Positions 41,501-43,047 of a stretch of DNA of 64,000 nt are shown one piece after another. Source of the DNA: Oikopleura dioica (lineage: Eukaryota; Animalia; Chordata); NCBI GenBank assembly GCA_907165135.1, contig OU015566.1, positions 8,804,001 to 8,868,000 of the forward strand, written 5' to 3'. Below the pieces are notes generated by a model, which made no database searches, was not told where the DNA came from, and saw only the letters and a program-made list of their open reading frames with translations. The number at the start of each line of letters is the position of its first letter. Position 1 is the stretch's first letter. The position numbers were made by a program, and so were the translations under genes.

Positions 41501-41871
41501 ATCGTCTCGAGATCGTCCTCAGTAAGTGTTGGCAAACTGGCGGCGACACGATGTTGATTAGCCCGCTCGAGCCAAGCCACATCCAAGTTATCTAGGGAAT
41601 ACCTTGGCCGTGACTTTGGCGGCTTTATCGGCGGTTGAGGGGCGGATTCCAGCTCAACAACCTACAAAAGAAGGATTAGATCGCTGAATAATGAAAGAGT
41701 TGATCTTACATGAGCTTTCTTTTGTTTGGCTTTGGCAGGTACTTGGACCCCCCTTTCCCATTCAGTCTTCCAGTTGTCGGCTAAGTAGAAAAACTGATGG
41801 CAATCAGGGAGGTCTGTGACCGTCATGGCCGAGACCAAATCTTTCCGATACACCTCATTAGGCGTACTCAT
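35600..41871 (-). CDS. JADE: JADE-family PHD finger protein (EPC-N + PZP) with very long low-complexity C-terminus
   Basis: STPNEVYRKDLVSAM...LADNWKTEWERGVQVP, PHD1 [43 protein letters not shown] and LDWVFEYWRLRR...ITQLRSDLERSRNLLCLIIRREKIKK. Long P/S/K/E-rich exons follow. Confidence 0.9.
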
Positions 41872-43047
41872 TTAGTGTATCAAATCACGCTTTTTCTCAT
41901 CACTAAAAAGATAAACATTAGAAGAAAGATATGAAGTGAATGTTTTAAAGGAATATGAATGCAGTATGTCAACATTTCTATGAATTTTATGGTCAGTTTC
42001 AAGGTGATTTGTAAGCTCTTCTCTGCTGGTTTTGGTTACAGAGCACACGGGGCAATAAATCAAAGTTTTTCTATGCTTGATTGGTTCTCTTTCGTGACGC
42101 GATTTACGCTTTCTTGGGATAGTTTTTCGACCAGGCTTGTTTGCCTCATTGGCCGTCCACGACAGACATTTGAGATAAACATCTTCTGCAGTGTGAAATT
42201 CAGTGAGGTGGTCAGTCAGTTTTGAGAACAGTGGAGAACGATAGATGCAGAAGTCGCATTTATTTAGCCTCGTCAGTGGACGGCAAGCGAGATCTTTCAG
42301 AATATAATCTATAATCTGATGATCTTCGAAGCAGTGAATCCTCAGGACGTCAGTCGAAGAGAACGTTACCCCGGGACAAAGGTAGCAGGTGACTTTGTTT
42401 TCCGTTGACACTGGTGGTGGGACGGATCCTCTGGCTGACTTTTTCGCGACAAGAGCGCCGCTTCTGTTTGTTTTGGCAACGGGCGTTCTAGAGCTTGATT
42501 AATACATTTGCCGTCTAGTGCATTTCTTACGCAGGCGGCAGCTGTACGAATTCAAACTCCGATTGCTCTTGTTCCACTGTCTCAGACCGCCCAACTAATG
42601 CTTCCGGAGGTAAATCTATGTTGTACACGTCCTGTTCTGGTACAACTTGCTCTTCAACCCTGGCTAAGATGTAGCTATTGTGATAGCGCGCTTCATCTTC
42701 TGCTTGTTCTGCATGGAGCAAAGTATGGGTTCGCATATCTCAATACAGCCCTGATTTCGCCCCGGAAGACGAACCCCTGCCGATCTATAGTGACGCTTCC
42801 AGAAGTCGTCGACATCTTTGTCAGCGATAAGCATCTCGCAGAGCTGGCATTTCAGCAGGACCGTACCGGGAGAAAGGTCTTCGGTTGATATCATTTCACA
42901 AGTTCTATCAGCATTTGACTGGTGCGTCTGCATATGTTCGTCGAAATCTGGCTTTTGCTTGGCGGCGAAAGAACACTCGTCTTCGGCGCGACATTTGAAA
43001 AGCGTCAAGTCAGCAAAACAACTCAATACCGCTACATCATCAGCCAT
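41872..43047 (-). CDS. Multi-C2H2 zinc-finger protein
   Basis: Several CxxC...HxxxH units (CYLCPG...HCFEDH; CDFCIY...HLTEFH; CPVCSV...HLETDH) across three ORFs joined by short introns. Confidence 0.8.

Follow-up and report, generated by a model that had tools for sequence, protein, structure and literature searches.

What does it mean when the stop codon of one gene is followed, with no nucleotide between, by the start codon of the next? This question is raised by a stretch of Oikopleura dioica DNA 64,000 nucleotides (nt) long (assembly GCA_907165135.1, contig OU015566.1, positions 8,804,001 to 8,868,000), called 'the window' here and the source of all positions below. On its minus strand, an open reading frame (ORF) for a protein with C2H2-like zinc fingers (ZnF; 41872..42411) ends where the first-exon ORF of a JADE-like PHD-finger gene (JADE; ATG at 41871-41869) begins. 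Both appear in the ORF listing, and the sequence at the junction, read directly, is ...ATA CAC TAA ATG AGT ACG. An AG at 41904-41903, preceded by a cttttt tract, lies 31 nt (41902-41872) ahead of the JADE ATG, and so inside the ZnF frame. An earlier reading of the letters alone, the original prediction, had pointed out TAA 41874-41872, the ATG at 41871, and the tract with its AG, and all of these coordinates proved correct. It offered four ways to understand them: trans-splicing at the AG, with the two mRNAs mutually exclusive; termination and reinitiation on a dicistronic mRNA; readthrough into a ZnF–JADE fusion; or a 71-nt intron that ends ZnF elsewhere. The explanation we favor, with a probability of roughly 0.55, is that this is a junction within an operon resolved by a spliced leader (SL), that the ZnF gene has lost its stop codon there, that the zero gap is a by-product of this loss, and that the ZnF mRNA is still cut upstream of the trans-splice acceptor. 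The abutment is most likely no device for coupling the translation of ZnF and JADE.

The junction is not an assembly artifact, for it has been sampled twice, independently. Over 2084 nt, L001, a contig from a Tara Oceans marine metagenome, differs from the window by 17 substitutions, without a single indel (99.2% identity), and the AG, the TAA-ATG, and a TAT codon to which we return below are identical in the two. Because this independent contig carries the same junction, we dismiss the assembly collapse that the original prediction had named as one way in which it might be overturned.

41872..41874, minus strand: TAA that closes the genomic ZnF ORF and touches the JADE ATG, at positions -3 to -1 of that start (sequence; same TAA in L001).

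Stop–ATG abutment alone is statistically unremarkable. Two others occur in the 64-kb window when at least 100 open codons are asked for upstream and at least 50 downstream, and these are chance occurrences that give the baseline for the pattern; what distinguishes the present case is that both ORFs belong to real, conserved genes. The other two, at 52459 (+) and 5498 (-), are off-frames of an ankyrin-repeat gene and of an opposite-strand gene. A scan of the junction for promoters and terminators of bacterial type gave no matches, a type of scan that is irrelevant for Oikopleura.

How, then, is the JADE mRNA made? Reads from three oligo-dT RNA-seq runs (X8, X9 and X10) and one single-cell run (X5), filed under the same species label, were mapped to 41000-43400. 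Most of those that map are 90-95% identical to the window, and hence come from a diverged sister lineage, which we name lineage B. In X8, X9 and X10, respectively, 5, 12 and 7 reads—24 in total—pass from 41904 into the 40-nt SL, with agreement of 0.96-1.0. The reverse complement of the sequence joined at 41904 is CATTTTTGAGTCCGATTTCGATTGTCTAAC; with AG added to it, 49 exact copies occur in the window's own genome (G000). One of these (L014) has ACTCATCC before it and the splice donor GTGAGA after it. The genomic copies of CATTTTTGAGTCCGATTTCGATTGTCTAAC are the Oikopleura spliced-leader RNA gene, which no Rfam model recognizes. The 49 copies often occur as inverted pairs, 450-2000 nt apart, and one such pair (G000 C4:8878849-8879371) is found ~11 kb past the end of the window.

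In lineage B, JADE has its own trans-spliced mRNA, with a 5' untranslated region (UTR) of 31 nt. In the window lineage, trans-splicing at 41903/41902 is a strong inference from the conserved acceptor and leader: the AG and the T-tract preceding it are kept in every lineage whose contig extends that far, and the 31 nt that follow are identical to the window at 26/31 positions in lineage B and at 27/31 in another group of orthologues, the L007-type.

41903..41904, minus strand: SL trans-splice acceptor AG of JADE (24 lineage B reads; AG and T-tract conserved).
41872..41902, minus strand: JADE 5' UTR, 31 nt from the SL junction to the ATG, lying inside the ZnF run-on ORF in the window lineage (lineage B SL reads).

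Where did the ZnF frame end before it met JADE? Orthologous contigs were fetched from public assemblies and their DNA aligned around the junction. All of the orthologues share ...HRNxDxLLSYSFK and four further residues, and then stop; the window and L001 alone extend for another 19 codons. The alignment is free of gaps for ~25 nt beyond the conserved block TAT TCC TTT AAA, so that homologous codons can be read off one by one. The fifth codon past AAA is TAA in L004, L005, L006 and the L007-type contigs (L007, L008, L009 and L010). It is TAT in the window and L001, and also in lineage B (L002, L003 and L012), where a TAA comes two codons on. In the window, the frame crosses the old spacer, the acceptor and the entire JADE 5' UTR before it meets its first in-frame stop, TAA 41874-41872. 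This run-on, YLSSNVYLFSDEKKRDLIH, would encode a 19-residue peptide that includes LSSNVYLFSDEK; it has a counterpart in no other lineage compared, and of the 17 substitutions between the window and L001, one is located here and is nonsynonymous. Run-on and terminating TAA alike are peculiar to the window lineage. The triplet before the JADE ATG is TAA in the window, CTA in lineage B and TCA in the L007-type, and lineage B reads agree with this, showing three substitutions, at 41873, 41874 and 41876. Conservation of TAAATG in other Oikopleura lineages, proposed at the outset as a check, is not what is found: they have CTA ATG or TCA ATG, instead.

41929..41931, minus strand: TAT, homologous to the ancestral ZnF stop TAA, and predicted polyadenylation [poly(A)] site of ZnF (alignment; L006 tail).
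41875..41931, minus strand: ZnF ORF run-on, 19 codons, YLSSNVYLFSDEKKRDLIH (window and L001 only).
41905..41928, minus strand: pyrimidine-rich spacer of 24 nt, the ancestral intercistronic region, now within the run-on ORF (alignment).

Measured from the ancestral stop position, the junction in the window is an unexceptional one for an operon: 24 nt to the acceptor AG and 57 nt to the JADE ATG, where the gap between ORFs is 0 nt, values within the limit of ~60 nt between same-strand neighbors in such an operon. In every lineage with sufficient contig, this codon is followed by a T-rich spacer, the AG and the conserved leader, and wherever the contig is long enough ZnF and JADE are adjacent. 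Among contigs that include the AG, the spacer from ZnF stop to AG is 25-27 nt in L005 and the L007-type, and 16 nt in lineage B. Outside the T-tract and AG the spacer (41905..41928) shows little conservation, and its homologs are non-coding in five other lineages. Its 24 nt match the 23-30 nt given for Oikopleura intercistronic regions (Ganot 2004, as cited in PMC1488885) and the median of 31-33 bp for Oikopleura operons (PMC7986045). Of the first proposal in the original prediction, then, trans-splicing at AG 41904/41903 holds, on the evidence of the 24 lineage B reads; mutual exclusion of the two mRNAs in the manner of SL1-type operons is not supported, given the spacers of 16-27 nt in the sister lineages and, in one of them, a poly(A) site ahead of the acceptor.

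The same comparison bears on the two proposals that would give the abutment a role in translation. In one, ribosomes on a dicistronic mRNA would terminate at the ZnF TAA and restart at the adjoining ATG, and in this way translate JADE. Termination–reinitiation at overlapping stop and start codons is known from caliciviruses and from segment 7 of influenza B virus, where it requires both a dicistronic mRNA that is mature and a conserved element upstream. The junction resembles these systems in that a stop lies directly beside the next start, with zero gap, and RNA contigs from a sister lineage, described below, are dicistronic. It differs in that the downstream gene possesses its own SL-capped mRNA, and in that the abutment occurs in one lineage: elsewhere the ZnF stop is 47-58 nt ahead of the JADE ATG, with a short upstream ORF (uORF) between. 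Nor is a conserved upstream element seen; the 31 nt are kept as JADE 5' UTR, whether they are coding or not. We consider this mode of translation very unlikely. Readthrough of the stop to yield a ZnF–JADE fusion protein has, in our estimation, almost no chance of being right. The TAA and the JADE ATG share a frame, but elsewhere ZnF comes to a stop further upstream, which makes fusion impossible in those lineages; JADE has its own mRNA, and nothing positive speaks for a fused product.

The codon that was once the ZnF stop has an odd history. The tree contains a split, supported at 100/100, that sets L004 (TAA) and window/L001 (TAT) on one side against lineage B (TAT) and the rest (TAA) on the other, and on any rooting the third base of the codon has changed at least twice. 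The first two bases, TA, are invariant, and the flanking bases are variable. The gene itself is constrained: across the last ZnF exon, 101, 109 and 69 of 147 codons are invariant at positions 1, 2 and 3, respectively, a pattern that indicates purifying selection on ZnF. Repeated change at the third base, an invariant TA and purifying selection, taken together, fit a base that lies at or beyond the site at which the mRNA is cleaved.

Where is the ZnF mRNA cleaved? The best view of this comes from a sister lineage. One public run has yielded a Logan contig, L006, that represents the ZnF mRNA from end to end. At its 5' end are the final 21 nt of the SL, with the junction 6 nt ahead of the ATG of ORF1 (the first of the two ZnF ORFs described further on); the ZnF intron is removed; and the contig closes with ...CCT TCT TAA and then A only, a run of 23 A if the two in the codon are included. 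This run is almost certainly non-templated, because the closest genomic sequences continue TAATATTTTC... at that place; the TAA is genome-encoded in the closest genomic relative of L006. In the L006 lineage the mature ZnF mRNA is one without a 3' UTR, and its poly(A) site, when placed on L007-type genomic sequence, falls ~25 nt ahead of the acceptor of JADE. The near-absence of a ZnF 3' UTR that had been predicted is borne out in spirit by this one complete sister-lineage mRNA, which has none at all. Polyadenylation of ZnF upstream, by way of an unseen last exon, had been named as a result that would overturn the prediction; the upstream site comes close to what the evidence suggests, and no unseen exon is involved.

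The 71-nt intron can be set aside. A GT (41973-41972), an AG (41904-41903) and, just past the AG, a TGA at which ZnF would end are all present, and on these grounds a GT-AG intron at 41973-41903 had been proposed. Its removal would delete D, L and SYSFK, which are invariant in six lineages; in three lineages the GT is replaced by ATT or ACT; and four RNA contigs, L006, L010, L011 and L013, follow the genome through the region without a splice. We reject such an intron as exceedingly unlikely, contradicted as it is in sister lineages.

Put together, these observations suggest the following course of events. A C2H2-like ZnF gene and, behind it, a JADE-like PHD-finger gene would be transcribed as an operon and resolved by the SL. 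The JADE mRNA would be formed by joining the 40-nt SL onto AG 41904/41903, which would leave it a 31-nt 5' UTR with a uORF. A change of TAA to TAT at 41931-41929 would have opened the ZnF frame for 19 codons, up to the lineage-specific TAA; stop and start abut, on this account, because a genomic stop was lost in a very compact operon. Cleavage of the ZnF mRNA would still take place before the acceptor is reached, at the conserved TA or beside it; addition of the tail would give back UAA, and ...SYSFKTFTS would be the C-terminus of the protein. Were ZnF made from read-through or dicistronic RNA, it would bear 19 extra residues and stop at the TAA beside JADE. Cleavage upstream is favored because a poly(A) site has been mapped there in a sister lineage, because the 24-nt spacer is typical, and because of the pattern of substitution. 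A more particular version of this—that ZnF in the window lineage, and possibly in lineage B too, has no functional genomic stop, and that UAA is completed by polyadenylation once the mRNA is cleaved behind the T or TA (41931-41930)—we put forward tentatively, at somewhat below even odds. At the expected 3' end of the mRNA the genome offers a T or TA and no stop, TAT in the window, where four lineages have TAA.

Several observations weigh against the account just given. In the window lineage the SL junction and the 3' end of ZnF are alike placed by homology, and the A-run of L006 is taken to be non-encoded on the strength of five other lineages. No canonical AAUAAA occurs upstream of the predicted cleavage site. 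We considered the block TATTCCTTTAAAA, invariant in all lineages, as a poly(A) signal hidden in coding sequence, and make no claim for it: 48/87 (~55%) of the synonymous third positions across the exon are invariant, and four invariant third positions in a row have a probability of ~0.09. Slight scatter in the position of cleavage, moreover, would give rise to non-stop mRNAs. And polyadenylation at the stop is not the sole fate of ZnF RNA. Two L007-type contigs from two runs, L010 and L013, both SL-headed and spliced, pass the ZnF stop and the acceptor, and end exactly 28 nt beyond the AG. This is the point at which a k=31 assembly graph must branch against the SL–JADE mRNA, the SL also ending in AG. 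Two metatranscriptome contigs from the Joint Genome Institute (JGI), L008 and L011, go further and link ZnF to spliced JADE exons. Assembled contigs that span two genes are no proof of a single molecule; these four are, however, consistent with the polycistronic poly(A)+ transcripts that long-read data show to be common in O. dioica (bioRxiv 10.64898/2025.12.04.692336). ZnF mRNAs with 3' ends inside JADE may also exist.

These same RNAs give substance to the strongest competitor, that the two transcripts genuinely overlap. ZnF would then use TAA 41874-41872 as its stop, and either have its 3' end inside JADE coding sequence or be carried on a stable dicistronic RNA, SL–ZnF–JADE–poly(A). With the acceptor inside ZnF coding sequence, one precursor would then give rise to JADE mRNA or to full-length ZnF mRNA, never to the two together, as in the first proposal of the original prediction. 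In the window lineage, two independent samples show the genomic ORF to be open across the acceptor, RNA that spans the acceptor exists in the sister lineage (L010 and L013, with L008 and L011 joining ZnF to spliced JADE), and polycistronic transcripts, as noted, are no rarity in this animal. Against this, the extension is unconserved and its stop is lineage-specific; the sole complete sister-lineage mRNA, L006, is polyadenylated upstream of the acceptor; and the two-gene contigs carry the reservation given above. Near the acceptor, SL-bearing reads fully account for the lineage B depth, a weak test in that the sequence upstream is too diverged for mapping. We consider overlap unlikely, though a serious contender.

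RNA of the window lineage was sought in two ways. An exact search of JGI metagenome contigs with a 24-nt pattern gave no match, and a word search with the last 80 residues of ZnF, aimed at short ORFs, gave no candidate. A first protein search had returned one near-identical protein only, that of L001, a DNA-like contig complete with introns. Runs X1-X3 contain 5-11% of the words of the region.

How does the junction compare with systems already described? As far as they can be tested, the defining features of an SL-resolved operon of Oikopleura are found at this locus. In common with the SL operons reported for O. dioica (Ganot et al. 2004 and Denoeud et al. 2010, summarized in PMC1488885 and PMC7986045), it has genes on the same strand tens of nt apart, a single 40-nt SL joined at an AG behind a pyrimidine tract, a spacer of ~25 nt, and an upstream gene that, in sister lineages, is itself SL trans-spliced; assembled RNA contigs of a sister lineage span both genes. 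It departs from them in that the upstream gene of the window lineage has lost its genomic stop, with the result that the ORF overlaps the acceptor and the whole of the downstream 5' UTR, and in that the upstream mRNA of a sister lineage is without any 3' UTR. The SL1-type operons of C. elegans and the intercistron-less operons of Ciona (PMC1488885) are what this locus looks like at the level of ORFs: on the model of the original prediction, the upstream 3' end and the trans-splice site would compete for the same nucleotides. Their poly(A) site is at the acceptor, however, whereas that of L006 is ~25 nt upstream, and with such a distance between them both mRNAs can be obtained from one precursor.

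Stop codons completed by polyadenylation are a feature of animal mitochondrial mRNAs and of nuclear genes of Blastocystis (PMC4159000). The ZnF gene would resemble these in having a genomic ORF without a stop at the end of the mRNA, and a conserved T or TA to which the tail would supply A; it differs in that completion is deduced here from one sister-lineage mRNA together with a pattern of substitution. Our search of the literature found no report of a poly(A)-completed stop in a tunicate nuclear gene. We know of none in the nuclear genes of any chordate.

The remainder of the ZnF gene, all of it on the minus strand, is arranged as follows.

41932..42487, minus strand: last ZnF exon, conserved coding part, with C2H2-like fingers, to ...SYSFKTFTS (six orthologues).
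42488..42530, minus strand: ZnF intron, GT-AG, 43 nt (sequence; homologous intron in RNA contigs).
42531..42736, minus strand: first coding stretch of ZnF ORF2, with ATG 42736 in the window lineage (sequence, ORFs).
42664..43047, minus strand: ZnF ORF1, 127 codons, conserved to ...WKRHYRSAG; on the same RNA as ORF2, in another frame (ORFs, RNA contigs).
43057..43058, minus strand: putative SL acceptor AG of the ZnF mRNA, 9 nt ahead of ATG 43047 (by homology).

The six orthologues of the last exon, from public assemblies, are 97, 83, 72, 71, 67 and 66% identical to it; Pfam gives C2H2-type matches, weak ones, for ZnF. The homolog of the 43-nt intron is spliced out in L006, L010, L011 and L013, and kept in L008 and L009. 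Four RNA contigs (L006, L009, L010 and L013) have the 3' part of the SL at their start, with the junction 6-29 nt ahead of the ORF1 ATG, and the window has a T-rich tract and AG at the matching place. These four are colinear with the genome over the boundary between ORF1 and ORF2, and three of them have the downstream intron removed. The offset from the ORF1 frame to that of ORF2 is 0, with TGA TGA between, in L005 and L010, +1 in L006, and +2 in the window and L004. An intron that might join the two frames in every lineage was looked for and none was found, the RNA contigs being colinear there. The conserved N-terminal peptide of ORF2 has no preceding in-frame ATG in the L005 and L010 lineages.

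Upstream of ZnF is a gene that may be that of the phenylalanyl-tRNA synthetase beta subunit, which its product resembles; the C-terminal end of this product stops at ~43296 (-). This stop is ~240 nt upstream of the putative ZnF SL acceptor (AG 43058-43057). The upstream gene, ZnF and JADE may all belong to one operon. Single-cell reads, which are 3'-biased, are concentrated at 43106-43348. The motif TTTAAAATAATG occurs in the 3' UTR of the upstream gene and, in the L006 and L007 lineages, at the 3' end of ZnF. Within the same 3' UTR, lineage B reads omit the 114 nt of 43182-43295, with 10-19 reads per bulk run crossing the joint 43181/43296. The ends of the omitted sequence, GA..TT, fit no GT-AG intron on either strand, and the skip is probably an indel between the lineages.

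JADE, on the other side of the junction, has the following parts.

41710..41871, minus strand: JADE exon 1, 54 codons, ATG at 41871 (sequence and ORFs; nearly invariant among lineages).
41662..41709, minus strand: JADE intron 1, GT-AG, 48 nt (spliced reads; also absent from RNA contigs L008 and L011).
41218..41661, minus strand: JADE exon 2, end of the EPL1/EPcA domain and first PHD finger; 3' limit unmapped (Pfam).
41880..41900, minus strand: 6-codon uORF, ATG 41900-41898, TGA 41882-41880 (sequence; ATG and TGA kept in lineage B and the L007-type).

Reads from which intron 1 is removed number 3, 14, 10 and 2 in X8, X9, X10 and X5, respectively, with a joint of 41659/41708 that can equally be placed 2 nt further on. 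Exon 2 matches PHD_2 (3e-13), PHD (5e-9) and EPL1 (2e-7) in Pfam; the ORF that follows, 40937-41203, matches zf-HC5HC2H_2 at 1e-13; and no bromodomain or PWWP match occurs in the ORFs downstream of exon 2. By these domain matches the gene is JADE-like (PHF15/16/17-like): EPcA/EPL1, and then PHD, zinc knuckle and PHD, without bromodomain or PWWP, its C-terminal limit being unmapped.

The uORF within the JADE 5' UTR begins 2 nt past the SL junction and ends 8 nt ahead of the JADE ATG, and two of its codons vary (MRKSVI versus MRITVI). At position -3, its ATG has a purine, contributed by the SL, and the JADE ATG a pyrimidine; translation of JADE may therefore depend on leaky scanning, or on reinitiation after the uORF.

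What, finally, does the junction signify? In the ultra-compact genome of this chordate, a feature that is striking at the level of ORFs is most likely an ordinary operon junction plus one change of base. Annotation that simply follows the ORF would add 19 possibly spurious residues to ZnF, and would report overlapping genes. The ZnF mRNA of the L006 lineage is an extreme case of its kind: it is capped by the SL, its poly(A) tail begins at the stop codon, ~25 nt short of the next acceptor, and the mature molecule has no 3' UTR. Among close lineages the third base of that stop has flipped between A and T at least twice, the gene being under purifying selection throughout. Can an animal nuclear gene, then, rely on its poly(A) tail for its stop codon? 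If this one does, a tail-completed stop would be a consequence of extreme operon compaction, in which the 3' UTR has shrunk to nothing.

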